From positions 124,001 through 188,000 of the IMG/VR virus record IMGVR_UViG_3300031933_000215: a stretch of DNA of 64,000 nt, one strand, 5' to 3'. This document shows positions 23,472-38,668 of this stretch, one piece after another. Both the position numbers and the translations under genes were made by a program. The notes beneath the pieces are model-generated. The model was not told the DNA's origin. It was given only the letters and a program-made list of their open reading frames with translations, and did no database searches. Every line of letters starts with the position of its first letter. Position 1 is the stretch's first letter.

Positions 23472-24359
23472 TTACACAACCGATGCGCCATCGACGTCCT
23501 GTTCACCCAACGTGGGTTCAACACCACCAACATCCAGTGTGAACTCGGCACCGTTGGTTGAGTAACCCAGCGCGTGGTACGTGGATACGTGGACATTGAC
23601 TTGTGCGGCAATGACTTCGTTGTACGTGAAGTTGCCAGCACCGCCACTGCTGCCCGATACTTCCTTATCCACACCAGAGACCAGGGCCAGTTCAGAAATG
23701 ACCGGAGACCGAGTGGAACCGGTGCGAATCCGATGGGCATTCAGGATCTCTTCGATGTCCTTAGGCCCCAAGGCCACCGTCACTACCGCCGAAGCGGATT
23801 CGGACGAGTTCGAACCAACAACCATACCGGAATTCGGAACTTTGGGACGCTGTGGGTTGAGGTTGTCAGTGGTAGGTACAAACGGAGTGACGGTCGCGAC
23901 GCCGTCCACAATCTCAACGCGCTGCAGTTGCGCGTTCACCTGGGTCATGTCAATCCGACGCAGGTAGTAGGCGATGTACTGACGACCATTGTGGGATTCC
24001 TGTACCCGCAGGGCGTACCGACTACGTTCGTGGGCCGGGAGGTCGTCGTTCATTTCACGCAATACAAACGGAATCTGTCCGTACAGCGCAGCGTCGGTGG
24101 CGCGATGTACAATGGGGACTGTTTCGTCACTGCCGTCGTCGGCTTTCACCGTCGCGTGACCGAGGTTGCCAATGGCCAAGTACCGCATGCTTGGCACTTG
24201 ATGACTTTCAGGTGCCACGCCGGACTGTACATTGAACCGTTCATTCAGTGTTGTGTTGGGTACCAACTTGAACGGCAGGCCCAGATTTTTGATGGTTTGC
24301 AGAAAGGTACCATACACCGTTCGGGTGATACCAATGATTTCCTGATCGATAGCTGCCAT
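23472..24359 (-). CDS. Conserved phiKZ-like virion structural protein
   Basis: NTTLNE.F, YLAIGN.GH, H..TDAALY..IPFVLR...DDL, IAYYL, ISELALVSG.D motifs recalled from phiKZ-like virion proteins; start MAAIDQ. Confidence 0.65.
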   Translation of the reverse strand: MAAIDQEIIGITRTVYGTFLQTIKNLGLPFKLVPNTTLNERFNVQSGVAPESHQVPSMRYLAIGNLGHATVKADDGSDETVPIVHRATDAALYGQIPFVLREMNDDLPAHERSRYALRVQESHNGRQYIAYYLRRIDMTQVNAQLQRVEIVDGVATVTPFVPTTDNLNPQRPKVPNSGMVVGSNSSESASAVVTVALGPKDIEEILNAHRIRTGSTRSPVISELALVSGVDKEVSGSSGGAGNFTYNEVIAAQVNVHVSTYHALGYSTNGAEFTLDVGGVEPTLGEQDVDGASVV

Positions 24360-24522
24360 TGTCTTAAGACTCCGTAATAAGTGGTCGTTCACACACGATT
24401 ATACTACCTGGGTAGAACTACCCAGTGCGTGGGTGTGATGTGGAATACAGCGCCATGACGTCAAGAAACAAAAACAACGGACATACCGCTCATGTCATTC
24501 GCCTTTTCCTAAATGAGAATTG

Positions 24523-24792
24523 TCATAAGATATGGCATTGTAAGGACCGACTATGCGGAAATACTGGCGGATCAATGATCCGCCAGAGATCAGTCAAAGT
24601 GAACATCGCCGTCATCAATTCTTCATGGATTCGGTAGAGTTCGGGTGTTCCCCAGTATTTTAGAGGAAGATTGTTTTTGTCGTTGAGTTTATTGGACACG
24701 AGCAGACACTCAGTCACGGCTTGTTCCAAGTCACACTCACTGCTTAGGTCGTGGATTTCAATGTGCGTAGGTCATAAGGCTTCTTTGCTCAT
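24523..24792 (-). pseudogene. Probable pseudogene of a second 2OG-Fe(II) oxygenase
   Basis: ATG 24792 overlaps the upstream stop (ATGA) with GGAG RBS; MSKEAL*PTHIEIHDL...DLEQAVTECL aligns with EPWKTVIHKDHI...DIDVAIGEIF of 26072-26662; TGA at the Trp position; no catalytic half. Confidence 0.6.
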
Positions 24793-25208
24793 ATCTCTCC
24801 TAACTCCTCTTTACAATAGCCGATGATAACCGAGTACAGTACTGTTGCTTTGAAGGAAGTGGTCAGAACCGCCGGTATCAGAGTATCGTAGACGACCGCC
24901 GTTTCTTCGTTGTAAGGTGTGAAATGGTCGTCGTCGTGGAGTAGTTGCGGGTGAGATAAAACCGAATAAAAGTTATTGTCGTATTGTTTTGAAATATAAT
25001 CGGCGTAACAAATCGCCACGATGTAGCTCTTCGCCGGGAACTCCAACGCTTCGACGTCACCATTGATCATGTTCAACGCACTGACAATCACATTGGGGTT
25101 ATACGATCCCCCAAAGTAATCGGTTTTATTGCCTTCCCGATGAAAGCGTCTAAGACGGTCTAGCCAACCACCATTCAATGAGTGATTTGTACCCACTGCA
25201 TTCGCCAT
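24789..25208 (-). CDS. Hypothetical protein of the radical SAM cluster
   Basis: FPAKSYIVAICYA...FY.VL..P.LL.DD.HF.PY; overlaps upstream rSAM gene; start uncertain. Confidence 0.6.
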   Translation of the reverse strand: MANAVGTNHSLNGGWLDRLRRFHREGNKTDYFGGSYNPNVIVSALNMINGDVEALEFPAKSYIVAICYADYISKQYDNNFYSVLSHPQLLHDDDHFTPYNEETAVVYDTLIPAVLTTSFKATVLYSVIIGYCKEELGEI

Positions 25209-26049
25209 CCAATCCTTCCTTTCGTCGATAGTGTTCTGTCAAACATGTACCCTTAAACTCACACGAGCGACACACATCCGAAAGCAGGGTGTGTTTTTCT
25301 TTTTGGGTCCATTCAAGGTACGCATTGAAATCCGGGAGTTCCAGGAAAAACTCCCGATCGGCGTCGTCGAACTCCAAGACCCCAAAATTGCCATTTGGAG
25401 TGATGTAGACATGGTCGTCCGAGAACGCGTTACGGACACCGTCAGCGACGTCGTTCAATAATGCTGTGTTACGTAGCTGGCTGTTTGGAAAACCCATTAC
25501 CCAGCGTTTCACGTACTCTACAAAGGCATTGTTTGTATTACCTCGATCATTGGCCTGATTGGGACTGTAAGGTTTGATTTCCACCGAGTTCAAGTTCGCT
25601 AACGACCGGATCAATTCGATTTGCTGATCGACGTCACCGGCCATCACTTCCGGCGTGGCCAAAACAATGACGTTTATCGGACGTGAAAACACCAACATGT
25701 TTGTGAAAACTTGTTCATGGTGGGGCCGGTGGTCAAAGTCATACGAGACGTTGACGTCGATATCGTCGTCGTATAGCCATTCCGACATTTGGTAGAAATT
25801 GGTGGTTATGGAAATGGGACCATCGTAATATCGCCGAACGACCCCCTTTAGATCATGGACGTACGTCTGATCCAACAGGGTCACTTCACCACCATAAATC
25901 TCAACGGCTTCAATTTCGGGGAGTTCCGAGAGACGATGGTCCAGGTGTGTCAAATCCAACACGCGTCGAGACCGGAGCTGGTCTTCGGTTAAATAACAGT
26001 TCGCACATCGGAAATTACATCGGTACAAAGGGTTTATCGATACGATCAT
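25150..26049 (-). CDS. Radical SAM protein with Cys-rich C-terminus
   Basis: CNFRCANC (CX3CX2C), YGGE, ITTN; C-terminal CRSCEFKGTC...C. Confidence 0.9.
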   Translation of the reverse strand: MIVSINPLYRCNFRCANCYLTEDQLRSRRVLDLTHLDHRLSELPEIEAVEIYGGEVTLLDQTYVHDLKGVVRRYYDGPISITTNFYQMSEWLYDDDIDVNVSYDFDHRPHHEQVFTNMLVFSRPINVIVLATPEVMAGDVDQQIELIRSLANLNSVEIKPYSPNQANDRGNTNNAFVEYVKRWVMGFPNSQLRNTALLNDVADGVRNAFSDDHVYITPNGNFGVLEFDDADREFFLELPDFNAYLEWTQKEKHTLLSDVCRSCEFKGTCLTEHYRRKEGLDGECSGYKSLIEWWLARPS

Positions 26050-26071
26050 TTAACACCCCATGATAGAGAGG

Positions 26072-26662
26072 TTAGTAACCTGTGGGGTGACCAAAGAACA
26101 GATCGCATGCTATCGACATACGCATAACCCCAGGACTGGGTTTTACGTAGTGTCCCAGATAACTTGGGAACACGTAAACCGTATCGGCTTCGGGCGTTAT
26201 TTGGTAGTTGGCAAAGTGGTTTTTCGTTATGTCCCACTCATAACCACGACCGGCACAACCACGTGGGTCGACGAGAACCAGATTCCCTGGATTGGGAATC
26301 AGATAGAAAACAGCACTCACTTGAGCCCCGTTATGCACGTGCAGATCAAGACCGTCATTATTCTGACTATAAATACACCACATGCTGGTTCTATAGTCTT
26401 TGTCGTTCAGCGTAATGCCGAACTCTTCTTGAACGTAACGGAGCAATGCGGGTAGTATAACGTCGTCGTGCAGTTTGCTCAACGTAGGCCGTTCGGCGGG
26501 GTCGTATAAGTCAACCCTACTACCATACGCATTGTTATTGCTGTCCTCGTTGATCCCCATGGAAAATATCTCGCCGATGGCGACGTCTATATCCACATCG
26601 TGATCCTCGATGTGGTCTTTGTGGATCACGGTTTTCCAAGGTTCTATGCGCTCGTATGCCAT
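26072..26662 (-). CDS. 2OG-Fe(II) oxygenase (TIGR02466-like)
   Basis: HVH, SAVFYL, L.LVDPR, VFPSYLGHYV.P, RMSIA motifs. Confidence 0.8.
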   Translation of the reverse strand: MAYERIEPWKTVIHKDHIEDHDVDIDVAIGEIFSMGINEDSNNNAYGSRVDLYDPAERPTLSKLHDDVILPALLRYVQEEFGITLNDKDYRTSMWCIYSQNNDGLDLHVHNGAQVSAVFYLIPNPGNLVLVDPRGCAGRGYEWDITKNHFANYQITPEADTVYVFPSYLGHYVKPSPGVMRMSIACDLFFGHPTGY

Positions 26663-26671
26663 TGTCGTCCC

Positions 26672-27364
26672 CTATGGGTTTTTGAACGTGGGGTCGCCTG
26701 GAAGTAGGTACTGTTTTATTTTGATCACTTCCAACGTGGATGCATCAAACAGACAACCAAACGCCCGTTTCTTTCGTGTGGTATCACCGTCATTCGGTGG
26801 CGCAACATTAAAAAAGGTACCTATTTCCTTCCCAGTCAGGTCGGTGTAAAAATAGATGTCCCGGAAACGAAGTAATCGTTCATCGTTTAAATGTAAACCT
26901 ACACCGAAATAGTCGATTGGTACACACCCAGGCGGTAGCCGTGGGTATTGATGTCGTGCGATGTTGAGGTCGTACACCTTTAATGCTTTTTGTTGCGTCT
27001 CCAATTGTAGCTTTAACGTGTAGGACGTACCTTGAACAAAACCCTCGGGTAGCTCACAATCAAACAATGGGGCGACCTGAGCAACGTCACACCGACGGTA
27101 CGATATCGAAATAGTGTCTTCGGGGTAGTTGGTATTGTTTTTGCGGGTAAGGCCGATCAACTCCCAATTCTTCAATTCCGGCCACGGACTGGCTAAGATT
27201 TCAGGACTGTGTTCGATAGCCATATTGAACAAGGGTAGTACCGGTTCTGATAACACGGGGAAGTTGGGACGGTAGGTATTCTCGGACAACCCATTGGAAT
27301 CAAGGGTGATTTCCTTTGCAGTCGGGTCGACCCCATCGATGTTAGTCAAAGAAACATTAGACAT
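26672..27364 (-). CDS. Hypothetical protein of the radical SAM cluster
   Basis: 230-aa ORF overlapping the upstream rSAM stop; GAGG RBS. Confidence 0.6.
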   Translation of the reverse strand: MSNVSLTNIDGVDPTAKEITLDSNGLSENTYRPNFPVLSEPVLPLFNMAIEHSPEILASPWPELKNWELIGLTRKNNTNYPEDTISISYRRCDVAQVAPLFDCELPEGFVQGTSYTLKLQLETQQKALKVYDLNIARHQYPRLPPGCVPIDYFGVGLHLNDERLLRFRDIYFYTDLTGKEIGTFFNVAPPNDGDTTRKKRAFGCLFDASTLEVIKIKQYLLPGDPTFKNP

Positions 27365-28391
27365 TTCTTACCTCAATCAAATCGACAATACCAACTTCAC
27401 TAGCTTGATTCAGTTCCGCTTCCAACGCTTTCATCTTACTGCAATGTTCGTCAACCCGACAACTTTCCTGTGTATCCATGATCGTTTTCCGACATCCGTT
27501 ACACAAACTGAAGAGTGAACATCCCCAACAGTCGTCATGCATGGACAGGTATAACATCGAATCCTGAAGAGGTGTGGTGATTGCGTCACTGGCCATCTCA
27601 TTTTCAAAATCAATCGGAAACATGTCATCGTCACCAAATGCACCACAACTGTAATACGACCCGTCGGGATGTAGGTTACGAATTCCTTTATCGCAGTCAC
27701 GACTTATGGGACATGTCGTCTTAAGTCCGCCCAAGGAACGTATGAACTGCTGTGTGTTGTATTCCCATGGAGTCAACCCCGCCTTATGTATTTCGAGGTA
27801 TTTGGCGTAAATGTCCCCCATCAAATAAGAAATACTTTGACGCCCGCTGGCGAATGCCCAATTAAGCTTACACACTACGCCCATTTTTTTGGCCAGTCTG
27901 ACATTATCCAAGGCGCGTTGAACGTTACTCTCGTCTATCACTGAGATGAAATCTGGACGGTACCCGACCCGCTCTAAGAACAGGTCACTGACTGCCCAAA
28001 AGTCCTCTTCTAAAAACACCCGTGTACGAGTAATTAATCGACTGTCACCGTAATGGAAGGACGTCCCCACCCCGATTTGTGGGTGGCGAAACAGCTCAGT
28101 CCATTTGTCGGGCCGCTTATAAAAGTCCCACAAGTTGGTCGTGAAGCTGACAATGGTTTCGGTCATGCCGCGTTCTTCCAACAGCTTGAGGATATCCCAA
28201 TAATAGTCGGGCCTGAGCATCAACGGATCACCACCGTTAACAATGATCGTTTGGGTGTTCGGAAACCGATCCAGAAAGCGAGCAATATAGTCCAGATTGA
28301 GAACGTCTTTCTTATCGTCGGTTATGTTGGTGGAGCTGCAGAACGTGCAGGCGAAGTTACAAAGTTCCGTTGGTTTGATGATCAGATCCAC
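27357..28391 (-). CDS. Radical SAM/SPASM-domain protein
   Basis: IIKPTELCNFACTFC, NGGDPL, FTTNL; SPASM-like C...C...YSCG...CWGCSLFSLCNGC...HC; GTG start with AGGAG RBS. Confidence 0.9.
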   Translation of the reverse strand: MDLIIKPTELCNFACTFCSSTNITDDKKDVLNLDYIARFLDRFPNTQTIIVNGGDPLMLRPDYYWDILKLLEERGMTETIVSFTTNLWDFYKRPDKWTELFRHPQIGVGTSFHYGDSRLITRTRVFLEEDFWAVSDLFLERVGYRPDFISVIDESNVQRALDNVRLAKKMGVVCKLNWAFASGRQSISYLMGDIYAKYLEIHKAGLTPWEYNTQQFIRSLGGLKTTCPISRDCDKGIRNLHPDGSYYSCGAFGDDDMFPIDFENEMASDAITTPLQDSMLYLSMHDDCWGCSLFSLCNGCRKTIMDTQESCRVDEHCSKMKALEAELNQASEVGIVDLIEVRNV

Positions 28392-28460
28392 GGGTAAACT
28401 CCTGTTCGGTATTGGATGACTATATAGTTAGACGTCGGCGTTGAAAACAACCACACACAG

Positions 28461-28495
28461 CATAAAACCACGGCCTCAGGTACCGTGGTTTTATG
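28461..28495 (-). terminator. Rho-independent terminator inside the radical SAM cluster
   Basis: CATAAAACCACGG...CCGTGGTTTTATG 13-bp perfect stem directly after the stop at 28496. Confidence 0.75.
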
Positions 28496-29479
28496 TCACC
28501 ATTGGTTTACTTTGGCGATTGTTTCCTTCGGTAAAACACACTCGGTGATTCCATAATCTTCCATGATTGACAACACGCGATGGTCCAGACACGTCGGCAG
28601 AAACGGACACTCGCCACACTCTTTCGTTTTGGTGGTGTAAGCGTACTGTTCTAAGATGACGGCGTCGTACTTCTTACGATAGTCCTCTACCCCGTCAACC
28701 CGGTACCGGTCACGGATTTGTATCAAATCTTCGTAAACGATGGGGATGGCGTAAAACTCATTCTCATAAAAAATGATTACGCGTTCTAGTTTGTCGTGCG
28801 GACTCACCACATCGACGTGTTGGTCGACCATACAGCCGTCGTTAGTCGCCTGAGTGGTGACGGTCACAGATTTTAACCAGTTAAACGCGCGCCGGTACTG
28901 TTCTGGATCGTTACTGGTTCGAGCAAACGACAGATTAAAGTCCACACCTTGACCGTACTGTCTGAGGTAAAAGTTGTTCAACGTTTCGTAGTTATCGACT
29001 ACCAACGACTGACTCAAATTCAACTGTGGGTGCAGGTACAGGTTCGGGAACCGGGCTTTGACGTCCCGAACCTTCTCGGCAATGACCGCATTGTAGCGTT
29101 CGTTCAGGTTCTTCGATTCCGGAATGACCACGTTGATCTGAAGTTCCTTCATACCAAGACGATCAAGGGCGTTCAATACCTGTAAGTCGGGTTTCACCAT
29201 GGTGGAGTTGACAACCAGTCGATCAAACCTTTTGATTAATTCAGTCAACCGAATGTCATTCAGGATCTCCATCGTGTTGGTGGCGGTGAAGATATCGGTA
29301 CTACCCAAAACGACCGCATATGGGTCGAGGTGTTCTAGGAACTCATAGGCCACGCGGTACATCTTATCCGTAGCTTTATTGGGGGAATCACGATCAACAT
29401 GGCAACCCGCGCAATTGAATGCACAACCCGCTAAGATCTCCAACTGCAGTTCGAATGAGTTGAATTTTTCGATGTTCAC
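28496..29479 (-). CDS. Divergent radical SAM protein
   Basis: CAFNCAGC motif; C-terminal CGECPFLPTC...C; lacks the canonical GGE. Confidence 0.8.
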   Translation of the reverse strand: MNIEKFNSFELQLEILAGCAFNCAGCHVDRDSPNKATDKMYRVAYEFLEHLDPYAVVLGSTDIFTATNTMEILNDIRLTELIKRFDRLVVNSTMVKPDLQVLNALDRLGMKELQINVVIPESKNLNERYNAVIAEKVRDVKARFPNLYLHPQLNLSQSLVVDNYETLNNFYLRQYGQGVDFNLSFARTSNDPEQYRRAFNWLKSVTVTTQATNDGCMVDQHVDVVSPHDKLERVIIFYENEFYAIPIVYEDLIQIRDRYRVDGVEDYRKKYDAVILEQYAYTTKTKECGECPFLPTCLDHRVLSIMEDYGITECVLPKETIAKVNQW

Positions 29480-30480
29480 GAAATCACTCCATAGAGTCGT
29501 TTAAACTCACAATGTTTGTTTGTGATGTTCACGTGGTCACTGTGTAGAAAACAACCCAACCCGCAACGCTGATAAAACTCACAACTCAGGCACTCGCGTT
29601 CTTGAATGAACCGGACCTCGGACTCATGGATGTTGTCAACAACAGTCGGGTCCGATTTGAACTGGTCCCGATCGGCCAAAATCCGACAAGAGCCCGTATG
29701 TCCTGTCGGAAGAATGATGAACGAACTCCGACAGGTCGCTGTGTTGTGGTGATTCTCACGAAACCCTTTGACTGGTTGACATTCCGGATAGTGTTTATCC
29801 AACCACAGGAAAAAGTCAACCAGTTCAACATCACTGGGCTGTAAAATTTCAGCGTTATCTTCGGGTGAATAATAGTCAAAGAAAATCGGGTAGTCCTGGT
29901 AAAGTCGATCAAACACGACGTTGGAACCACGCATGAATCGTTCAATGTTAGGTCGGGTCAACACCACGGAAATGTTTGACAGCCAGGGTTTGAACTTGGC
30001 CAGGTTTTCCTCAAACAGTTTAAGCGTCTGAGAGTTAAACCGACCCGCAGCATCGTAAGACGTGCAAAAGGTGAACGGAATCAGCAGTTCTTCCAATGTC
30101 TTGATGAACCGCATCACCCGCTCGGCCTTCTCGAACACTAAGTTGGTCACGAAATTGATTTCACAGTGTTTAACTGATGTCACTACCCGATGACAGAACT
30201 CTACATAGTCGTCGAATACTCGATCGGGGAGTTCGTCCATGAACAACTCCCCACCCATGACGTTCACACTGTAAAAATCGTGATCGTTGGTGTTATTAAT
30301 GACAACGCTTGCTTTCTCAACAATCTCATCAACACCAGTCCAGTCGCTGTGGTCCTGCCAACAAAACCCACAGCTAAGGTTGCAGCGCTCAAAGAAGTTG
30401 ATGAAAAATTCTTTATTCTGTCCCCGCTTTGCTTCCACTATCTCCACCAGCGGTATCAGGTCCGGGTTGTTCGTGGCCAT
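29476..30480 (-). CDS. Radical SAM/SPASM-like protein
   Basis: CNLSCGFC, MGGE, FVTNL, TSYD; C-terminal C...C...CLSCEFYQRCGLGC...C. Confidence 0.9.
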   Translation of the reverse strand: MATNNPDLIPLVEIVEAKRGQNKEFFINFFERCNLSCGFCWQDHSDWTGVDEIVEKASVVINNTNDHDFYSVNVMGGELFMDELPDRVFDDYVEFCHRVVTSVKHCEINFVTNLVFEKAERVMRFIKTLEELLIPFTFCTSYDAAGRFNSQTLKLFEENLAKFKPWLSNISVVLTRPNIERFMRGSNVVFDRLYQDYPIFFDYYSPEDNAEILQPSDVELVDFFLWLDKHYPECQPVKGFRENHHNTATCRSSFIILPTGHTGSCRILADRDQFKSDPTVVDNIHESEVRFIQERECLSCEFYQRCGLGCFLHSDHVNITNKHCEFKRLYGVIS

Positions 30481-31165
30481 TGAGTATCTCCAAAGCGTAT
30501 TTGTTTAAAAGCAACCAGTTGGGGTTTTCTTTATCCCCAACGAAGAAGTGAAACAGGTTCTTTCCGTTGAACATGTATTCTTCAAACTGGACAGGGAAAT
30601 AAAACTGCCGGTAGTCCACCGCATCTCGGATAGAGAAAAACAACTCGAAGAACGAAGGAATCTCAAACAGCCAGACAACGTTAACACCGATATATTTCGG
30701 GTCGTTAATAACACCGTCATATCCCCGGAGATCTGGGTCTTTGTCATCGTCTATTGCTTTGATGTAGTCACAGTACTTGACCATCGAAGAGCAGAACAAG
30801 AAATACCGGGCCAGCAGGTCGGAGTGTTCTTCAACAAATTCATCTAAGAATCCATCTGGGGTTTCGAATGTAGCGATCCCAGAGGTGTCCCCCTCCATGA
30901 AATGGATCAGTACCAACAACACAAGAACGTTGAGTTCTTCACACTTAAAGAGTGTGTTGATTTCCATGTAAACACTGAGTAATTCTGAGAGTTCTTCTTT
31001 TGACAACGTCTCCACGTTGATCCGTGTTTTGACGTTCAGGTTTGCCAGGTAAAACACAAAGGGTTTCCCCTTTATTTTCGAATTACTGTAATCGACAGTA
31101 TACACTTTGTCGTTTTCGGCAATGACGTTGTGTAGGTCACTGATGGGGAGTGGTACGGTAATCAT
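30413..31165 (-). CDS. Hypothetical protein of the radical SAM cluster
   Basis: 250-aa ORF, GAGG RBS, overlaps next rSAM gene. Confidence 0.6.
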   Translation of the reverse strand: MITVPLPISDLHNVIAENDKVYTVDYSNSKIKGKPFVFYLANLNVKTRINVETLSKEELSELLSVYMEINTLFKCEELNVLVLLVLIHFMEGDTSGIATFETPDGFLDEFVEEHSDLLARYFLFCSSMVKYCDYIKAIDDDKDPDLRGYDGVINDPKYIGVNVVWLFEIPSFFELFFSIRDAVDYRQFYFPVQFEEYMFNGKNLFHFFVGDKENPNWLLLNKYALEILNGHEQPGPDTAGGDSGSKAGTE

Positions 31166-31175
31166 GACGTTTGCC

Positions 31176-32210
31176 TCATCCGTTCAGATTCATTTGTTTC
31201 AACACGTCTCGGTCTGCGTGGTACAAGTACCCGATGAAATTGTTATTCATGTTATCCCGAAATTCCGTGCGACCAAAAATTTGACTACAGTGGGTATTTA
31301 TATCCATGTTGACCAGGTCTCTGGCTTTCGTTACCGTGAACGAACCCTCAGGAAGAACCCTGAGTAGGTGGTTCAGGAATGGATCGGTGGTTCCATTCTT
31401 CGCATGGACTTTTTCGACAAGCTCACGTATTTCCTTGTGGTGCCTTTTAATAAACGCCACATTCCCTGGGTGGTTATCTGGATTGAACAGCACTGTGTCC
31501 TCCAGTGCTTCGATCTGGTCGTCGATATCGTCCCGTTCCAAGTCAATATCAAACCCAAAGTTTTGCTTTAGGTTGTAGATCCCATATAACAAGTCACGTC
31601 GCACGCCCACGAAGTCCCATGCCACTGATTTCCAGAGGATTGTTTCCATGCGCTCTACGAACGCGGATACGTAGCGATCAGATGGGTCAAAATCAACCAA
31701 GAGAACATGCGCCAGTAAGTATTCAAAACTGATACGCTCTTTCAGTTCGGCTGGGACGGGGCGCGGTTCTACTTCCTCATACCAAGCCCTTACAGCATCC
31801 AGGGTGGGGATTGTGATGTTTCGAAAACCGTCTTTTCGCGAACCTTTGGTACTGGTGCGACTTCCATGCTCGTACTTGTGGTTCACCGCATTCAGTTTCA
31901 AGAATCGATGTACCATCTCCACACTTGCCAGTGGGAATAAGGATCGCAGCCAGACCACCAAAAAGTAATTCAGGGAACGCTCGTCTATTAAAATGGTGGT
32001 CTTTTGTCCGATAGGCGTCAGGCATTCAACAAATGTGAATAGGTCACCAAAGTCTCTCTCGATTGCGTCGACCGACACAAACTGATACAATGGCCTAGGG
32101 CCATGCGTTACACGACACTGTCCAAGTGGTCCTACATAGACCAAGTTGTTGCGACCTACATTTCCAGTGAAATCGTAATCAATATAAACCTTATCCAACA
32201 AATGTAACAT
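31176..32210 (-). CDS. Hypothetical protein, paralog 3 of a tandem triplet
   Basis: MLHLLDKVYIDYDF; SFEYLLAH; ME.ILW; IFGR; YLY shared with the two upstream genes. Confidence 0.7.
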   Translation of the reverse strand: MLHLLDKVYIDYDFTGNVGRNNLVYVGPLGQCRVTHGPRPLYQFVSVDAIERDFGDLFTFVECLTPIGQKTTILIDERSLNYFLVVWLRSLFPLASVEMVHRFLKLNAVNHKYEHGSRTSTKGSRKDGFRNITIPTLDAVRAWYEEVEPRPVPAELKERISFEYLLAHVLLVDFDPSDRYVSAFVERMETILWKSVAWDFVGVRRDLLYGIYNLKQNFGFDIDLERDDIDDQIEALEDTVLFNPDNHPGNVAFIKRHHKEIRELVEKVHAKNGTTDPFLNHLLRVLPEGSFTVTKARDLVNMDINTHCSQIFGRTEFRDNMNNNFIGYLYHADRDVLKQMNLNG

Positions 32211-32232
32211 TATTTTTTTTACCTGCCGTCAG

Positions 32233-33270
32233 TCAGCCGTTCATTTTGAAATACTTCAAGGTCTCCGGCGTCAGATTGTAAAGATAATTAACAAAGACGC
32301 CGTTCGTGTCTTTGGTCATCTTCTCTCGACCAAAAAGAAAAGACCAGAGTGATTCTCTGTCGACAGCCACCAGTTCTTTCAGAACACTCCCGGTGAATGG
32401 TCGTTCCGGGTCTAAAAGGTCAAACAAGAAACGCCGATACTGGTCACCGTACCCAAGAAGCTCATCCACTTTATCCATCATCTTTCTGATGTACGCGTAA
32501 TCCGCTTTGACGACATCCACGTCTTTATAGGTTATTGCCGGGTCGAAAAACCGCTTAACCTCAGGCTGATTAAGTTGGTACTCGATATCATTTCGATCAA
32601 AATTAATCGGCAGACCAAGTGTTTTCTTCAACCTAAACCCATTGTAGAAAGCCGCCATTCGACGCTTAACAAAATCCCTAGCGCAGGATATCCACAACAT
32701 GTGTTCAATTTTCTTAGAAAGTTGATCTACATGCGGGTCAGCGTCGTCAAAATCCACACTTAAGGAGTGAGCCAAGAGTGTTTCATAGCTCAGGTGTTTT
32801 TTGAGTTCCGAACAATACCCACTACCATGTTTCGAACCCGCGTAAAAGCGTTTCGTGTCGTCCAGTGTTGGAGCCGGAAGCTGGTCAGCGTAATGATCGT
32901 AAGCAAACCCCCTAACTCGAACAAAACGATGGTGTATGTAGAAGGTCCTCAGGATTGCGTGGATGATTTCCACCGGCATCTCAGGATACACCGCTCGATA
33001 GTGGGTCACCACTAGCTGGTACATGTCGTCAATGTCCAACATTAACCACACGTCGCCTTCAGTAAGAATCAATGTTTCCATGAATGTAGGTAGGTCGCCA
33101 AAAGCATCCAACGCTTCTTCGAGGTTGGTGAATTCCATGAGTCCTTCGGGATGGAATTCATTTTGAGTATGCGTACGGTCGTCCAGATAAATGTACGAGT
33201 CGGTTGGTTGTTTCAGGTCAACGCTCGTAAATGCAAAGTCCGCCCGGACGTCATCAATTAAGTGCAGCAT
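32233..33270 (-). CDS. Hypothetical protein, paralog 2 of a tandem triplet
   Basis: Start MLHLIDD at 33270 behind AAGGA RBS; SYETLLAH, IEHMLW, LFGR, YLY. Confidence 0.7.
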   Translation of the reverse strand: MLHLIDDVRADFAFTSVDLKQPTDSYIYLDDRTHTQNEFHPEGLMEFTNLEEALDAFGDLPTFMETLILTEGDVWLMLDIDDMYQLVVTHYRAVYPEMPVEIIHAILRTFYIHHRFVRVRGFAYDHYADQLPAPTLDDTKRFYAGSKHGSGYCSELKKHLSYETLLAHSLSVDFDDADPHVDQLSKKIEHMLWISCARDFVKRRMAAFYNGFRLKKTLGLPINFDRNDIEYQLNQPEVKRFFDPAITYKDVDVVKADYAYIRKMMDKVDELLGYGDQYRRFLFDLLDPERPFTGSVLKELVAVDRESLWSFLFGREKMTKDTNGVFVNYLYNLTPETLKYFKMNG

Positions 33271-33272
33271 GG

Positions 33273-34322
33273 TTATGTTTCCTTTGTTGGGGACAGGACC
33301 ATATCTGAAATCTTTACAGGCGTGACTGAATGCAGGTAACTGAATATAAGGGAGCCTGTTCCCCATAATGCATCGTCGATACCGAAGAATGCACTCCACG
33401 GACGCTTCCGGTCGGCGTCAATCAGCTCGATGAATTCGTCGTGTGTGATCTCATGGTCCTTCAAGAAGAAGCTAACGGCGAGCTCCTTGAAGTCCTCTAC
33501 AATGTTATTGCGTTTGTTGTTAACGCTAATAGCGTGGTGGATTTTCTGGGCGTTAGCTGCAGTTATCTCATTAAGTGATTCATCAAACCCCAGCGCTTCA
33601 TCCAGCTTTGAGATTTGTTCCTCGATGTCGTCCGCCAGCGGATCGATATCTAGGTCTAGGTTTTTCTTTAGACCGAAGATTCCTAATAACAGCCTACGGC
33701 GCCATGTGGTGTAGTCAGTCACCAACATTTGCCACAACAACGCTTCCATCCGTCGTCTAAAACAGATGACATAAGGATCTGACTCAGAATAGTTACACGC
33801 ATGTGCGTGAACCATAAGGTATTCAATAGAAACGTTCTCTTTTACCAAATCGGAGAACTCACCATTTACTCCCGCCTCTTCGTACCAAATGCGCGTCTGC
33901 ATTGGTGTCGGGACTGTAAGTCCGAGTCTACCCTCACGATTAATGCTCGCGCGGGTGGAAAGGCGAATCTGGCTGTATTTTTGGTCGATCGTCACCATTC
34001 TCAAGAACCGATGTGTGTTCTCAAGCGTGATGTTTGGAAAAATACCACGCAAGAAATGAACGTAAAAACGGTTTAGATCTTGCTCGTCGATGAACGCCGT
34101 GACATCACGACCACTGTGAATAATGGATTCGATGAATCCATTTATACCACCAGGGGCGTCTATAAGCACATCAAGATTGGGGTACTTCATCAGCGGAGTT
34201 GCGTCTTGAGAAAAAGCCTTAGACCCGAGGGAGTTAATATAAACAATATCTTTCGGGTTGGCCCTAGCGTTCGGACTGGAAAATGAGTAATCAAGCGACA
34301 GGCCGTTTGTCAACCGGATCAT
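33273..34322 (-). CDS. Hypothetical protein, paralog 1 of a tandem triplet
   Basis: MIRLTNGLSLDYSF; SIEYLMVH, MEALLW, FFG, YLH; ATGA-coupled to upstream gene. Confidence 0.7.
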   Translation of the reverse strand: MIRLTNGLSLDYSFSSPNARANPKDIVYINSLGSKAFSQDATPLMKYPNLDVLIDAPGGINGFIESIIHSGRDVTAFIDEQDLNRFYVHFLRGIFPNITLENTHRFLRMVTIDQKYSQIRLSTRASINREGRLGLTVPTPMQTRIWYEEAGVNGEFSDLVKENVSIEYLMVHAHACNYSESDPYVICFRRRMEALLWQMLVTDYTTWRRRLLLGIFGLKKNLDLDIDPLADDIEEQISKLDEALGFDESLNEITAANAQKIHHAISVNNKRNNIVEDFKELAVSFFLKDHEITHDEFIELIDADRKRPWSAFFGIDDALWGTGSLIFSYLHSVTPVKISDMVLSPTKET

Positions 34323-34861
34323 CGTCTGCTCCTTGAACCGTGGCAGTTGCTGTGGCAGTTCGAATGACAGACTGACAGATCCACGATCTCACCGTTGTGA
34401 ATGCGTTCATATAACTCGTTCTGAACTGTTTGGATCAGGTCGGATAGATTTGACCGATCAGCATCGTTTCGAGTGGAAATGTAGGTCGGGTCACCACCGG
34501 CGGTTTTCAAGCTGTGTATGCTCTGGCGGTAATTATTGTTCAGTGCTGCAATACCCCACTCTTTATCGTGATCGCCGTTTGTGTAATTACTGCCAGAATA
34601 ATGACGCGCGGTGTAAACCTTGCGCATTGAAGTACAACGTTCCGCTTCGGCTTTGATCACGTCAACAACGTTACTTGCATCGACATCTCCGGTGTTTGCA
34701 TCAGTACCCCTATCAAAATGAGACAGTTCCACCAGCGGACTTTGGTCCATGTACTTGTCGTCCCGGGCAGAACCCTTCCACCATTTCGCTTGGTCCTTGG
34801 CGTACTGGTTGATGTTGTTATTGACAGCCGCGTGAAAATCACTCCGTTTTAAATCAGCCAT
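34319..34861 (-). CDS. Putative radical SAM substrate/precursor protein with CHSN-CHSN-CHGSRSRR tail
   Basis: 180 aa; 4-residue Cys-His repeats at the extreme C-terminus; directly downstream of the first rSAM gene. Confidence 0.65.
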   Translation of the reverse strand: MADLKRSDFHAAVNNNINQYAKDQAKWWKGSARDDKYMDQSPLVELSHFDRGTDANTGDVDASNVVDVIKAEAERCTSMRKVYTARHYSGSNYTNGDHDKEWGIAALNNNYRQSIHSLKTAGGDPTYISTRNDADRSNLSDLIQTVQNELYERIHNGEIVDLSVCHSNCHSNCHGSRSRR

Positions 34862-34862
34862 G

Positions 34863-35999
34863 TTAGAATACCTCTACAACTGGGATCGTTTTTGTATCCG
34901 AAGTCAGCGCGGACGGCTCTTTCTCATACCGAATGCCTTCCTCACCCATGAACCCATTGAGTACTTCCTTCAGGATGTCCTGATCGGTGTTTTTCATGGA
35001 CCGCATCATGGACTTTGGAGAAGCACAGATATCGCCCTGCCAATTAAGTTGATGACAATCGCCATTACAAACGTCAAATACGTCACAACTGAAACAGACT
35101 TCGTTCAGGGTGCTTTCGGTTGCAATGTTACATCCACGTCCTTCCGAGAACACGATATCTGAAATGGTTTGATCCAAGGTTCCGAACGTCGTCTCAGGGG
35201 CGCCATTGGGACACCCGCCAATGGTACCATCGGCGTTCAGGGTTAGAATCTTCTGTTCGCATTCCCGACTACGGCACCCGGAAAACGTATTGAATACAGT
35301 GCTGGTCAGCAGGCTTTCTAGGAACATGTTCAAGATCTTTTCGTACGCCTTGTGTTCCAACGTCTGTTCCCACATTTTCAAGAACCACGCGTCCAACTCC
35401 AGATTGGTAGGAAAAATACCGGTGTTCTCACGGGCGTTACCATTCTCAGTGATGCGTTCAAAGTTGATGAACGCAACCCCAAGGTTGGTCATCTTGTTGA
35501 TCAAGTCGATTGGCTCAACATCCATCAGGTCTTTGGACACGCAAATCATGACCGTGACGTCTATGCCTTCGGCCACTAACTTACGGACGTTTTCTTCCCA
35601 CAGCGCTTCTTGGTTGCGGTTCCCTTGCCAACGGATGCTGTAATCCCAGGATGTCCCGATTGAAGTTCCTGCCACTTTCTTCAGAAACGCCAGTCGGTCA
35701 TCTGTCAGCTTATACGTCAGGTTGGTTTGAATACCCCATGTCAAGTTATCCCAGAGTCCATCCAGCTCATCGTAAACCTTTTCCATTTTGTCCAGCGGGC
35801 AGAGCATCGGCTCGCCACCATGGAACGAGATGTTGGCGGAACGGAAGGTGGGGAACTGAGCTTTCAGTCGGTGAAAGAAGTCAATGGTGGCATCCGGGTC
35901 AAACCAACCCTTCTTCCCGTTGGTACCACTTGTGAAACAGTGCTGGCAGTTTAACTGGCAAGTTTCGGTAGTTTTCAGGTAGACCATTAAATCACGCAT
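34863..35999 (-). CDS. Radical SAM/SPASM-domain protein (peptide-maturase-like)
   Basis: YLKTTETCQLNCQHC, FHGGEP, IQTNL, TSWD; SPASM-like CRSREC...GGCPN...CFSCDVFDVCNGDC...C; start MRDLMV behind GAGGA. Confidence 0.9.
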   Translation of the reverse strand: MRDLMVYLKTTETCQLNCQHCFTSGTNGKKGWFDPDATIDFFHRLKAQFPTFRSANISFHGGEPMLCPLDKMEKVYDELDGLWDNLTWGIQTNLTYKLTDDRLAFLKKVAGTSIGTSWDYSIRWQGNRNQEALWEENVRKLVAEGIDVTVMICVSKDLMDVEPIDLINKMTNLGVAFINFERITENGNARENTGIFPTNLELDAWFLKMWEQTLEHKAYEKILNMFLESLLTSTVFNTFSGCRSRECEQKILTLNADGTIGGCPNGAPETTFGTLDQTISDIVFSEGRGCNIATESTLNEVCFSCDVFDVCNGDCHQLNWQGDICASPKSMMRSMKNTDQDILKEVLNGFMGEEGIRYEKEPSALTSDTKTIPVVEVF

Positions 36000-36075
36000 G
36001 GTACGTCCTCGTTTATTTCTAATGAATGTCGCTACTGTACAATCATGACCATAAGTAAAAAAAGCAGCAGTGGGC

Positions 36076-37005
36076 TTACACCCACTGTGCCGGCCAAACG
36101 ACCTTCCAACCACCGTTGACGTAGGCTTGCAGTTGATTGTTACGGACCCGCAGACTGGTCTCGTCTGTAGAACCAATTCGCACGTAACGCCCGTCGTGGT
36201 GATTCACGTTCGGGTTAGCGTGGGTGGCAAGTGCGACACCCACGGCGTGTGGTGACATGTACCGGGTTTTGGTGGACATGTCCGCCGCCTGGGTATCCGT
36301 GGCCATTTTGTAGTTTTCGACGTCCCCCAGTCCCACCTGGGCCTTAGTAACCTTGTGTGGGTTGGTGCCGTCTTCCATGTGGTCGACCAAGCGGTTCTCG
36401 ACTCGGTTTCGATCTTCGGCTGCTTCTTCAAACAACATCAACGCGTAGGCACGCGTTTCATCGTGAAGTGCTTGGTCACCAGCCATGATCGCCTGAACAA
36501 TCCGTTCCAGTTCGGTGACAACCGGCTCAAACCCATACAGTTCCCACAAGGCGTGCAGGTGGCCAGCCGCTGGGTACTCGTTAGGCTTGCCGATGATGTT
36601 GGCCCACTCCACGGGCCGATCTTCTTCAGCCAGTGTGTCGATCACCTGCTGGAGTGCGTCGGTTGAAACTGCAAAGTCTCCACCCACTACCTGGTAATCC
36701 AGGAACACACTGGTCGAAACATTGGGGTTAACAACGATGATCGCCCCACAGACTTCCAGACCGCTTCGGGTCGTGGCCCGTTCGTACAGGTAAGTGGCGA
36801 TATAATCATCGCCCTTACGAAGCTCTGCACCTGACACATCCCGGAGGACCATGTCGCGGGTGTAGAACCCGCCGTAATTGGGAACCAAGACCCGGTAGTT
36901 ACCGGTGGTCACGGCGGCGTCCAGATCGTGTCGCTCGCCCAGGATGCGGTTATCCGGATTCCGGCCCGTCAAATCCAACGGGTATTTGTTAACAATGAGT
37001 GACAT
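36076..37005 (-). CDS. Virion structural protein (baseplate/fibre-anchor type)
   Basis: YPLD.TG.NP.N.I.GE N-terminus; H.....NPH.VTK.QVGLG.V.NY fibre repeat; paralog of 37022-38668. Confidence 0.7.
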   Translation of the reverse strand: MSLIVNKYPLDLTGRNPDNRILGERHDLDAAVTTGNYRVLVPNYGGFYTRDMVLRDVSGAELRKGDDYIATYLYERATTRSGLEVCGAIIVVNPNVSTSVFLDYQVVGGDFAVSTDALQQVIDTLAEEDRPVEWANIIGKPNEYPAAGHLHALWELYGFEPVVTELERIVQAIMAGDQALHDETRAYALMLFEEAAEDRNRVENRLVDHMEDGTNPHKVTKAQVGLGDVENYKMATDTQAADMSTKTRYMSPHAVGVALATHANPNVNHHDGRYVRIGSTDETSLRVRNNQLQAYVNGGWKVVWPAQWV

Positions 37006-37021: not shown

Positions 37022-38668
37022 TTAGGCTTCAAGTTGGGCGGACGCGTCATCGAATGCCGCAATCAGGGTGTCCGTGACGTCTTGGGCACCGGCACCGACG
37101 GTGGGAATCGGTGTCCGACCACTTCCACGGGTTGGGTAGTACAGACCAGGATCGGGCAGGAACTGACCTGTCGGTTGACGCACTGGGATGAATGTAATTC
37201 CTTCAGCGGGAACGTTGGTCACATCCAGTGACAGTTCCATGACCCGCTCAGCGCCGGTACCGGTGATACCCAACATGAAATCCCGCATGGGCGGGATGCC
37301 GTTCAGTGTGGTTATGTTTACCGTTTCGTTTGTCCAGTCGGCTTCAATACTAACCCACGCTTTACGTCCATCGGGTCCTGGTACGCTACCAAGCATGTGA
37401 AGGGGTTCGTCGGTTTCACTGAGGTGATAAAACGGCAGATGTTCATCGCGTCCGAAACTGTCTCCAGAGGTGAAGTCCCAGGTATACGTTGCGAAATACA
37501 CAAATTGCGTGTACATGTCGTCCTTGATGTCACCATACGTCATGTTCTCCAGCATTTGGGAGTTAGCAGCCGTGCCCAACAGGATGTCCTGTTTCAACCC
37601 TTCGAGGGTCATCCCAAATGTCCGGTCGGTGTCGTAAGCGGTACCATCGACCCGGAGGTAATTCTGCAAGATACCGTTGATGGTATCCATGCTGATTGCG
37701 CCGATATCCGCAGCGGTAATTCCGTGGGGGTTATTGGTGTCACTGAAATGCGGTTCCAGAACCTCGTCCTTGAGGGCTTGGATGACCACCTCTACCAGAT
37801 ACGGGGTCATGTACCGGTCGTTACGGGTCCCGTCATACGCTTCGCCCGGTGTGGCGATTCCGAAGTTCTGTACTAGCGAAAGACCTACGTCGGCTTTATC
37901 AGTACCGTGGGGGTTGTCGGCGTTCAGGTGTTCGTCAATTTCCCGTTGTACAGCTGCCCCTACAGCAACGTCCGTCGACTTCGGTGACATATAACGGTCA
38001 CTGCGGAGTCCTTCGGCTGCCTCGGTCTCGTTGGCCATCGGGAAGTTTTGTACGTACTCCAGCCCCACCTGTTTCTTGGTGACCATGTGAGGGTTGTCCC
38101 GACTGTTCATGTGGTCGGTTACAGTCCCCGCTTCCGTATCACCCAGTGCACGATTGATATCACCGATGGCTTCAACCACTTCTTCGAAACCGATCAGTTC
38201 ACCGGTGCCCTGATCGTGTGGGATCGGTGGGAACAACGCCGGGAGTGTGTCAATCTGACTCCATGCGCGAGTCAATGGGTTGACAGCTTTATTCGACAGC
38301 TCTTCCAATACGGCTTGATCTGAGAAGCCCCAGTGACCCCCGATGGTTTGGTAGGTCATGGACACAATACCACCGATATCGCGACTCAGGAAGCGCAGAG
38401 AACCTGCCAGAGCCTTACCGGTGTTGTTGGAGCCTTCGGGGAAATAGTGACCAAAGAGAAAGTCACGTCCTTCCTTATACAGACGACCAGTTGCTTGGTC
38501 ACGGATCTCAAACGACTCCACGTAAAACGGAGCCGCCTGAGGGATGATGAAATAATAGTCATCCCGGCCAGGGACCTGCAGGGTCTGCAACTCCCCATCG
38601 ATTTTGTTTGCCGGGTTGGTACCGTACGGGTCGAACTCGTACAGTCCCGTGGTGTTTACAGTAGCCAT
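37022..38668 (-). CDS. Virion structural protein with three NPH-type fibre repeats
   Basis: Y.FDP.G.NP.N.I.GE; NPHMVTKKQVGL, NPHGTDKADVGL, NPHGITAADIG. Confidence 0.7.
   Translation of the reverse strand: MATVNTTGLYEFDPYGTNPANKIDGELQTLQVPGRDDYYFIIPQAAPFYVESFEIRDQATGRLYKEGRDFLFGHYFPEGSNNTGKALAGSLRFLSRDIGGIVSMTYQTIGGHWGFSDQAVLEELSNKAVNPLTRAWSQIDTLPALFPPIPHDQGTGELIGFEEVVEAIGDINRALGDTEAGTVTDHMNSRDNPHMVTKKQVGLEYVQNFPMANETEAAEGLRSDRYMSPKSTDVAVGAAVQREIDEHLNADNPHGTDKADVGLSLVQNFGIATPGEAYDGTRNDRYMTPYLVEVVIQALKDEVLEPHFSDTNNPHGITAADIGAISMDTINGILQNYLRVDGTAYDTDRTFGMTLEGLKQDILLGTAANSQMLENMTYGDIKDDMYTQFVYFATYTWDFTSGDSFGRDEHLPFYHLSETDEPLHMLGSVPGPDGRKAWVSIEADWTNETVNITTLNGIPPMRDFMLGITGTGAERVMELSLDVTNVPAEGITFIPVRQPTGQFLPDPGLYYPTRGSGRTPIPTVGAGAQDVTDTLIAAFDDASAQLEA

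Follow-up and report, generated by a model that had tools for sequence, protein, structure and literature searches.

In a 64,000-nt stretch of DNA from the IMG/VR virus record IMGVR_UViG_3300031933_000215 (positions 124,001 to 188,000 of that record, hereafter the window), 13 minus-strand genes at 24789-35999 make up a block of 11.2 kb, which encodes five CX3CX2C radical S-adenosylmethionine (SAM) proteins, a 2-oxoglutarate (2OG)-Fe(II) oxygenase, three proteins paralogous to one another and a 180-aa protein whose end reads CHSNCHSNCHGSRSRR. We consider it probable that this block is a copy of a virus-restricted cassette for the post-translational remodelling of a single phage protein at its C-terminal tail, and the 180-aa protein (hereafter the CH-tail protein) carries that tail. 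The identification of the tail as the substrate of the cassette enzymes is a strong inference. A preliminary description of the block, made by reading the sequence, had proposed a modification cassette centred on a CH-repeat protein, and the near-invariant tail, its adjacency to one of the enzymes and the similarities of the enzymes all support this proposal. We defined a CH-tail cassette as an ortholog of the first radical SAM enzyme, rSAM1, directly upstream of at least three C-terminal C-H-x-x repeats, usually followed by R-x-R-R, together with the proteins Y, rSAM2, rSAM4 and rSAM5. All of these parts are present in the window, in canonical order, as follows.

34863..35999, minus strand: rSAM1, radical SAM/SPASM enzyme, proposed primary maturase (PF04055; SPASM-type motif)
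34319..34861, minus strand: CH-tail protein, 180 aa, proposed to be both substrate and end product, probably a virion protein
34322..34369, minus strand: C-terminal tail CHSN-CHSN-CHGS-RSRR, three C-H-x-(S/N) units followed by R-x-R-R
30413..31165, minus strand: Y protein, 250 aa, core cassette member (phrog_20767, E 2e-41)
29476..30480, minus strand: rSAM2, radical SAM with SPASM-type motif, core member (phrog_1802, E 6e-33)
27357..28391, minus strand: rSAM4, radical SAM/SPASM-like, core member (PF04055, 38.6 bits)
25150..26049, minus strand: rSAM5, radical SAM with a single C-terminal CX2CX5C, core member (phrog_1802, E 5e-26)

Apart from the tail at 34322-34369, the six frames of the 64-kb window contain no (C[HY]xx)n run, and the CHSN-repeat protein that had been noted at 34319-34861 was thereby found where it was expected. 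An exhaustive profile search of 1.84 billion representatives placed 613 clusters at 50% identity in the CH-tail family (293 at E <= 1e-10). Among the best 150 representatives, mutually no more than 50% identical, 132 end exactly C-H-x-x-C-H-x-x-C-H-x-x-R-x-R-R, the C, H and R positions being invariant in these 132 and in 28-29 of 29 unique phage-locus tails, and more than 95% have Ser (or Asn) as the fourth residue of each unit. The proteins adjoining rSAM1 diverge to ~25% identity outside the tail and range from 175 to 364 aa, whereas their last 16 residues are nearly fixed. The invariant residues are encoded by alternating synonymous codons (TGT/TGC for Cys, CAT/CAC for His, and five or six Arg codons); thus selection acts on the protein and not on a DNA or RNA element.

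Within the family the tail varies in the number of repeats (3 to 6), and variants were found with four to six units, with a one-residue insertion, with Tyr for the third His (in one lineage) and with an CHSNCHGSCHGS(I/L) end that has no arginines. Judged from these sequences, the variable repeat number and the His-to-Tyr lineage are more suggestive of a substrate motif that is repeated than of an unvarying metal site. The arginine-less end was seen at 16 IMG/VR loci (L079, L080, L081 and 13 others), at which the tail gene still lies directly downstream of an rSAM1 ortholog of ~48% identity, so that the arginine end is not universally required. One contig (L053:9686-11042) carries two tandem CH-tail genes with the tails CHSSCHSNVTCYNSRGRR, in which the third unit is displaced and Tyr replaces His; the cassette order is rearranged there as well. 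A c-type haem-binding reading of CX3CH was rejected, the protein being cytoplasmic and a haem lyase absent.

The variability of the repeats bears on a different explanation, in which the tail is an unmodified metal or iron–sulfur arm and the enzymes act on something else. The arm could be a cluster carrier or electron donor for the neighbouring enzymes, or a zinc, copper or iron site in the virion, and the true target could be another virion protein or a small molecule. The tail cysteines, spaced CX3CX3C and each followed by a His, are a plausible ligand set, five enzymes with two to three clusters each imply a large demand for iron–sulfur clusters, and modification of the tail is putative. 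Nevertheless we regard this explanation as unlikely, since repeat numbers of 3 to 6 and Tyr in place of His ill suit a metal site, since it leaves the position-4 Ser/Asn and the invariant R-x-R-R end without an explanation, and since the constant adjacency of tail and rSAM1 described below is typical of enzyme–substrate pairs. Furthermore, a homolog of the tailed protein is found in virions without the enzymes (see below), which is needless for a cluster carrier.

The gene for the CH-tail protein begins 1 nt past the stop codon of rSAM1, to which it is translationally coupled and almost always adjacent. A set of 45 IMG/VR loci was fetched through the tail, and for this reason the pairing was re-tested from the side of the enzyme. 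A profile of rSAM1 orthologs had at least 359 relatives in IMG/VR, the best 80 of which were kept; 68 of these loci have at least 1 kb of sequence downstream. An open reading frame ending (CHxx)n..RxRR was found in 51 of the 68 and the arginine-less variant in 16 more (67/68 in total), with the stop codon of the tail at a median of 626 nt downstream of rSAM1. The preliminary description had named homologous clusters devoid of the CH-repeat protein as the result that would speak against a modification cassette; instead, 67 of the 68 loci retrieved with the enzyme have the tail.

The canonical order across the 45 loci is cupin, rSAM1, CH-tail protein, Y, X, rSAM2, (B12-binding radical SAM protein), rSAM4, rSAM5, Z081 and 2OG oxygenase. 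The radical SAM paralog group (rSAM1/2/4/5) was present at all 45, the Y family at 43, X at 35, the cupin at 34, Z081 at 32, the 2OG family at 31 and the rSAM3 family at 14, and homologs of the 230-aa protein at 26672-27364 at 11. The gene order, ortholog by ortholog, recurs in Ralstonia phage RSL2 (ORF066-081), Agrobacterium phage Atu_ph07 (gp172-164), Pseudomonas phage pPa_SNUABM_DT01 (gp67-54), Sinorhizobium phage Phosso and metagenomic contigs. The cultured carriers include the RSL2/RSF1 group, FLC6, SURPRISE13, Atu_ph07, Phosso and pPa_SNUABM_DT01, and the cassette occurs in at least 125 IMG/VR loci. Carriers span phages of plant pathogens, of Pseudomonas aeruginosa and of gut, freshwater and deep-subsurface communities, and belong to at least three unrelated phage lineages with differing structural neighbours and G+C contents from 30% to 66%. 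In 50,697 phage records rSAM1 was found in 15, and the identical 15 hold rSAM4; a near-identity DNA search with the block gave no match among these records. Across 185,579 bacterial and archaeal species, with one genome each, only two loci were obtained, both on contigs of metagenome-assembled genomes that carry several cassette radical SAM genes and look like binned phage DNA. The cassette is thus effectively virus-restricted.

We then turned to the enzymes. That the block encodes five radical SAM enzymes, as proposed earlier, was borne out: CX3CX2C stands at residues 11-33 in all five proteins, which places them in the radical SAM superfamily, and all five are hit by PF04055, with the Pfam, NCBIfam and PHROG scans in agreement. 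Against a PF04055 gathering score of 29.5 bits, rSAM1 (30.2) and rSAM4 (38.6) scored above and rSAM2, rSAM3 and rSAM5 (18.5-22.8) below. The family phrog_1802 takes in four of the five (E 5e-26 to 5e-54), and rSAM1, rSAM2, rSAM4 and rSAM5 form one paralogous group by this match and by single-linkage clustering. The motifs are CQLNCQHC and CFSCDVFDVCNGDC in rSAM1, CNLSCGFC and CLSCEFYQRCGLGC in rSAM2, CAFNCAGC and CGECPFLPTC in rSAM3, CNFACTFC and CWGCSLFSLCNGC in rSAM4, and CNFRCANC and CRSCEFKGTC in rSAM5. The C-terminal Cys region has the full SPASM-type CX2CX5CX3C in rSAM1 and rSAM2, CX2CX5CX2C in rSAM4, and CX2CX5C alone in rSAM3 and rSAM5. The earlier assignment of SPASM motifs to rSAM1 and rSAM4 therefore stood, whereas rSAM2, listed as a plain radical SAM enzyme, has the CX2CX5CX3C motif too. 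Scores with the SPASM model TIGR04085 were 26.2 (rSAM1), 19.2 and 21.3 bits, all under the cutoff of 27 bits. Among the rSAM1 orthologs (n=22; RSL2 ORF067, Atu_ph07 gp171 and DT01 gp66 are examples) seven to eight SPASM-region cysteines and the GGEP SAM-binding motif are invariant. The start of rSAM1 is the ATG at 35999, the end coordinate given before. Orthologs of rSAM5 are RSL2 ORF077 and DT01 gp59. In Atu_ph07 (gp165/gp164 = L001:20159-21070) the annotation of the rSAM5 homolog gp164 omits the first ~66 residues, which would include CX3CX2C; a 198-nt unannotated gap precedes it, indicating either a mis-called start or a disrupted gene.

The named similarities of rSAM1, rSAM2 and rSAM4 in NCBIfam are anSME (the anaerobic sulfatase-maturating enzyme), DarE, DynA, CbpB, FxsB, YhhB, AmcB, PapB, the SCIFF maturase, WgkB and GggB, all far under the family cutoffs. 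The best for rSAM1 are anSME, DarE and CbpB; rSAM2 is weakly similar to the peptide maturases WgkB, GggB and PapB, and rSAM4 to anSME and TIGR04083. With the profile of rSAM1 orthologs, anSME 4k36 was matched over its full length in the PDB (E 3e-9), and CteB and two more radical SAM structures were aligned in part; single-sequence PDB searches with rSAM1, rSAM2 and rSAM4 were nearly empty. As far as such similarities go, they suggest that rSAM1, rSAM2 and rSAM4 are SPASM enzymes modifying peptides or proteins, and they lead away from nucleotide or cofactor families. The oxygenase at 26072-26662 can be assigned from its sequence to the PF13759 family (47.7 bits against a gathering score of 27, E 2e-12; phrog_81, E 6e-25), in line with its earlier identification as a 2OG-Fe(II) oxygenase. 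The cupin of other cassettes has Cupin_2 matches and a faint JmjC_2 signal. JmjC enzymes hydroxylate side chains of proteins. PADLOC gave only generic viperin N-terminal matches, so the cassette is no known defence system.

These similarities also speak to whether the enzymes might carry out nucleic-acid or nucleotide hypermodification, with the tailed protein an unrelated structural gene that happens to be linked. Phage radical SAM enzymes do occur in 7-deazaguanine pathways, RSL2 has a dihydrofolate reductase gene within the block and one accessory family has a faint TYW3-like match (E 0.004). We find this idea scarcely credible, as QueC/D/E, a kinase, a glycosyltransferase and a nucleotide-binding family are not conserved in the cassette, the reductase gene is lineage-specific, the SPASM architecture and best matches suggest protein substrates, and chance linkage cannot yield 67/68 adjacency across unrelated phages. 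In agreement with the preliminary description, which had recognized no queuosine, NrdG-type, cofactor, transporter or protease genes, the conserved set showed no likeness in Pfam and NCBIfam to queuosine, ribonucleotide reductase activase, molybdopterin or any other small-molecule pathway, nor to a protease or transporter.

The fate of the tailed protein is indicated by published data on Atu_ph07, the purified virions of which were analysed by gel slicing and electrospray ionization tandem MS (PMC6102473, Table S5). There, gp170 is listed among the virion proteins at 31.89 kDa, with 8 unique peptides and 35% coverage, and the computed mass of the Atu_ph07 CH-tail homolog is the same 31.89 kDa. 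The enzymes, Y, the X-position genes and the cupin (gp164-169, gp171 and gp172) are unlisted (PMC6102473). Since gp170 alone is listed, the tailed protein of Atu_ph07 is a virion component and the cassette enzymes are not, which lends outside support to the earlier guess that the cassette matures a virion appendage. In the gel, slices 1-9 all contained gp170, with the largest amount in slice 1 at the gel top, while the 117-kDa sheath and a 137-kDa baseplate protein peak in slice 2 (PMC6102473); gp170 thus runs far above its size.

The virion data likewise bear on whether the tailed protein might be a sacrificial precursor, with the modified tail cut off as a cofactor or a bioactive RiPP (a peptide made by ribosomes and modified after translation). 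Such a route has parallels in pyrroloquinoline quinone and mycofactocin, both of which arise from C-terminal precursor residues; the invariant core with a variable remainder resembles cofactor precursors, and SPASM enzymes and oxygenases would make a multi-enzyme tailoring set. Against this, a protease, peptidase or exporter was found in none of the 45 cassettes, the proteins are unusually large for precursors (180-300 aa), and the homolog is a stable virion component, with the 35% peptide coverage given above. We therefore hold a sacrificial precursor to be rather improbable. The term RiPP-like in the preliminary description fits the cassette in logic but fails in the strict sense: Pfam, NCBIfam and PHROGs scans gave no protease, exporter or PqqD-like element in the cassette, there is no division into leader and core, and the product stays in the particle. 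Its further suggestion of a secreted or anti-defence peptide effector is disfavoured, because the large tailed product stays in the particle and has no leader, protease or exporter.

On the remodelling interpretation that we favour, the 180-aa protein would be made with an unstructured (Cys-His-x-Ser/Asn)x3-Arg-x-Arg-Arg-COOH tail on a small alpha/beta domain. rSAM1 would bind the tail, probably by reading the basic R-x-R-R end, and would most likely initiate modification, its 5'-deoxyadenosyl radical abstracting hydrogen from tail residues. Its diverged paralogs rSAM2, rSAM4 and rSAM5, and the accessory rSAM3, may then act on this tail in additional radical steps. Any assignment of altered residues, or of a function for the modified product, is conjecture. 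Candidate chemistries are thioether cross-links of the cysteines, His-centred ring closure across the H-x-S/N triplet onto the third residue, and an anSME-like reaction by which Cys or Ser is oxidized to the aldehyde. The 2OG oxygenase, the JmjC-like cupin and, in some phages, a B12-dependent radical SAM methyltransferase could add hydroxyl or methyl groups, and X (triplicated in the window), Y and Z081 would be non-catalytic helpers or unrecognized enzymes. Virion assembly would take up the finished protein, probably close to the tail or baseplate, where its modified tail may serve as a covalent cross-link (a subunit lock) or as a metal-binding group. More tentatively, and with somewhat less confidence than in the remodelling itself, we suggest that diverse jumbo phages may have in common a virus-only pathway in which four to six radical SAM enzymes and oxygenases build a new, heavily cross-linked or metal-binding prosthetic group from the (Cys-His-x-Ser)3-Arg-Gly-Arg-Arg end of a structural protein.

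Several points weigh against tail remodelling. The virion location comes from one distant homolog, with ~30% identity over the last 69 residues, and the gel sample buffer of the Atu_ph07 study, as described, names no reducing agent (PMC6102473), so simple disulfide bonds formed by the three tail cysteines could account for the high-mass gp170. All five enzymes score under the NCBIfam cutoff of every characterized family, and the chemistry is for that reason a guess; the similarities of rSAM3 and rSAM5 are generic and N-terminal only. Pfam and NCBIfam scans found a RiPP recognition element in no cassette protein. The cupin present at 34 of the 45 loci is absent from the cassette of the window. 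Finally, a predicted complex of rSAM1, three 4Fe-4S clusters, SAM and the tailed protein reached a score of 0.12, where the mark is 0.34, and the tool classes this as no answer.

A structure model of the CH-tail protein had a pLDDT (predicted local distance difference test score) of 57.8, with a poorly predicted N-terminal domain and a tail below 50. In BFVD it matched only members of its own family, and in the PDB nothing meaningful. Three BFVD entries of Myoviridae sp. ctijX18 (A0A8S5USJ7, A0A8S5USV2 and A0A8S5USJ8; 504-660 aa) match the fold of the N-terminal domain, which on these models may also occur inside larger virion proteins.

The remaining genes complete the block. Transcription runs from rSAM1 through the CH-tail protein, X paralogs A, B and C, Y, rSAM2 and rSAM3 to a spacer with a hairpin, and then through rSAM4, the 230-aa protein, the 2OG oxygenase and rSAM5 to Z081. 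The genes share one orientation and are mostly coupled, with intergenic gaps of -68 to +22 nt and a single exception, a spacer of 104 nt, in accordance with the coupled minus-strand cluster described before. The features that accompany the core are listed below.

36068..36087, minus strand: terminator-like hairpin and T-run between the upstream tail-fibre-like gene and the cassette (consensus scan)
33273..34322, minus strand: X paralog A, 349 aa, cassette family X (BLASTP to paralog C, E 1e-46)
32233..33270, minus strand: X paralog B, 345 aa from the ATG at 33270 (BLASTP to paralog C, E 3e-45)
31176..32210, minus strand: X paralog C, 344 aa, mostly one copy in other cassettes (hhalign, structure model)
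28496..29479, minus strand: rSAM3, divergent radical SAM, accessory (phrog_31457, E 1e-11)
28464..28493, minus strand: hairpin in the sole long spacer, possible internal terminator or attenuator (read from sequence)
26672..27364, minus strand: 230-aa protein, accessory (homologs at 11 of 45 loci)
26072..26662, minus strand: 2OG-Fe(II) oxygenase (PF13759, phrog_81)
24789..25208, minus strand: Z081, 139 aa, last conserved cassette gene (phrog_20737)

The hairpin at 36068-36087, called by a consensus scan for terminators, has an 8-bp stem with five GC pairs followed by CTGCTTTTTT; its loop holds the stop codon of the 36076-37005 gene, and the T-run is followed by the ribosome-binding site of rSAM1. 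The cassette probably forms its own transcription unit. The terminator suggested earlier at 28392-28495 is a weak one: a 10-bp hairpin followed by TTTTAT can be read directly in this spacer, but the scan made no call at the hairpin (28464-28493) and the one at 36068-36087 is far stronger. An oxygenase pseudogene proposed at 24523-24729 found no support, the best tblastn match of any cassette oxygenase having an E of 0.44 and the Pfam search being empty.

The three ~345-aa paralogs of the window are a triplication of cassette family X. Their recognition as paralogs in the preliminary description was confirmed by BLASTP (E 1e-46, 3e-45 and 2e-29), but the start of the middle one is most likely 33270 and not 33399, the alignment of paralog B beginning at residue 44 of the long reading frame. 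Paralog C was related by hhalign to RSL2 ORF069 (probability 96%, E 2e-9) and to the counterpart on ERZ23499156 scaffold_1016 (L003; probability 97%, E 8e-11). A tblastn search with an X paralog found nothing, and the relationship to ORF069 is visible by profile comparison only. The model of paralog C (pLDDT 89.6) had one unnamed match among AFDB clusters and no convincing relative in the PDB. A protein tyrosine or dual-specificity phosphatase identity for X was rejected: the match covered the N-terminal 150 residues only (Z 5-6, Foldseek probability ~0.8), and the catalytic Cys is absent. For Y, which stands next to the tailed protein at the IMG/VR loci, Pfam, NCBIfam and the PDB (including a profile search) gave no match, and ESM Atlas look-alike searches for X and Y produced sub-threshold leads only. 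Z081 is 49% identical to RSL2 ORF081 over 61 aa, with a YPAKSY..A..YA block conserved, and its profile search against the PDB was empty. The 230-aa protein at 26672-27364 matched no Pfam, NCBIfam or PHROG family.

Individual lineages differ in their additions to the cassette. rSAM3 occurs in zero to four copies in other cassettes. At L054:12980-14650 and at 13 other IMG/VR loci, all of one lineage, a 556-aa B12-binding radical SAM protein with similarity to KedN5-type C-methyltransferases (83 bits) lies between rSAM2 and rSAM4; the same lineage also gains extra 2OG-FeII_Oxy_3 genes, and the window has neither addition. The dihydrofolate reductase gene of the RSL2 group (RSL2 ORF073; L002:20081-20617) lies between rSAM2 and rSAM4 and is absent from the window and most other cassettes. 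On ERZ23499156 scaffold_1016 (L003), genes for cytochrome bd subunits I and II (PF01654 and PF02322; 10053-12424) stand on the opposite strand ~1.7 kb downstream of the last radical SAM gene of the cassette; they may help oxygen-sensitive enzymes by scavenging oxygen, or the short contig may simply hold host DNA.

The genes flanking the block are those of a phiKZ-like (chimallivirus-type) jumbo phage. On one side, 23472-24392 encodes a DUF7208 virion protein with 58% identity to Phikzvirus homologs and matches in 288 phage records. On the other, 36076-37005 and 37022-38668 (both minus strand) encode adjacent paralogous tail or tail-fibre-like virion proteins (phrog_2163 and phrog_13857), which have an N-terminal region in common; the pair precedes the cassette in all chimallivirus-type loci. 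Identical sequence is present on ~232-kb contigs from gas-well, shale and freshwater metagenomes, and metagenomes are the sole source of the phage. The slot between the 36076-37005 homolog (36% identity, E 7e-49) and the DUF7208 gene holds just three small genes in Phikzvirus PA7. Taking together the phiKZ-like flanks, this small slot in PA7 and the rare carriage, the 11.2-kb block is an accessory insertion in a structural region. G+C is 0.46-0.48 in the cassette (24001-36000 region) compared with 0.53-0.55 in both flanks, i.e. 5-8 points lower, and together with the PA7 slot this suggests that the cassette was acquired horizontally in the fairly recent past. The cassette lies within the structural region, directly after tail-fibre-like genes, in two unrelated phage lineages. 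Elsewhere in the window, 10043-14629 (minus strand) is a 1528-aa reading frame in a stretch of 0.57-0.60 G+C with long antisense reading frames, and is presumably a large structural or polymerase-type jumbo-phage protein.

Among known systems, the antiphage system HXS, in which HxsA with its His-x-Ser repeats is matured by the radical SAM proteins HxsB and HxsC together with HxsD (PMC13128918), appears by analogy the closest in logic. Both have a full-size protein with short tandem repeats of His-x-Ser type (the cassette tail reads C-H-x-S three times, position 4 being mostly Ser), several adjacent radical SAM genes and a small helper, and in both the modified protein itself would be the functional product. 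HXS, however, is bacterial and its periplasmic product acts against phages, whereas the cassette belongs to viruses and its product enters the particle. The cassette also differs in its period-4 repeat with an invariant Cys at the extreme C-terminus, its R-x-R-R end and its four to six radical SAM enzymes with oxygenases. The HxsB (TIGR03978) and HxsC (TIGR03977) models gave 26.9 bits against cutoffs of 370 and 268, which leaves the cassette outside HXS.

The anSME family offers a second parallel, a SPASM enzyme acting on Cys or Ser of a folded protein in a short motif that ends in Arg; there is a loose likeness to C/S-x-P/A-x-R in the last unit, C-H-x-S-R, and in the S-R-x-R-R end. The anSME model TIGR03942 is the top NCBIfam similarity, but at 65.8 (rSAM1) and 42.2 bits (rSAM4) against a cutoff of 349 it does not take the enzymes in; unlike the anSME setting, the cassette has no sulfatase gene, and Gly, Ser or Asn stands in place of the Pro/Ala of the motif. 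The CXXX-repeat system (TIGR04115) has a period-4 Cys target beside a SPASM maturase, and rSAM1 aligns with the full length of that model, yet with 23.1 bits against a cutoff of 350 it falls outside the family, and the tailed protein matched no NCBIfam family at E <= 0.1, target families included. The CXXX-repeat system is bacterial, unlike the viral cassette, and we know of no characterization of its product.

The SPASM cross-linkers CteB and PapB (thioether) and XyeB, GrrM/OscB, FxsB, YhhB and AmcB (cyclophane) act on Cys or aromatic residues, including His, in short repeats. Cyclophane substrates have the pattern aromatic-x-x, to which the H-x-S/N triplet conforms. In contrast to these RiPP maturases, the cassette enzymes score far under the cutoffs, a leader, a recognition element, a protease and an exporter are all missing, and the substrate would be a structural protein of 20-32 kDa. 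SPASM chemistry on proteins has precedents: QhpD installs thioethers in the QhpC subunit of quinohemoprotein amine dehydrogenase. The similarity of rSAM2 to the QhpD model is just E 0.005, and a viral cassette without dehydrogenase context differs from that system. One report on archaeal proteins describes thioether cross-links that are a SPASM precedent within functional proteins (PMC13692751). The cassette is thus best filed as a virus-specific variant of radical SAM protein maturation.

Papers on the carrier phages give gene lists only, in which the enzymes are at times named MoaA, Fe-S oxidoreductase or 'DNA repair', and a comparative overview of jumbo phages makes no mention of radical SAM. 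We found no functional description of the cassette in the literature searched, subscription journals lying outside its coverage. Bacteria and archaea are well known to mature peptides, and a small number of proteins, with radical SAM/SPASM enzymes, whereas a multi-enzyme, virus-confined version aimed at a virion protein is not described in the searched literature. If true, this would be the first radical SAM-matured component of a virus particle, and its modified tail would staple virion parts covalently or mediate host recognition or penetration. Cultured, tractable carriers make the hypothesis testable by MS. With its invariant 16-residue tail and four paralogous enzymes, the cassette holds out the prospect of radical chemistry on Cys-His-Ser motifs that would be new, and the cassette may reveal a new principle of virion assembly or stabilization and a natural enzyme-plus-tag system for protein engineering.

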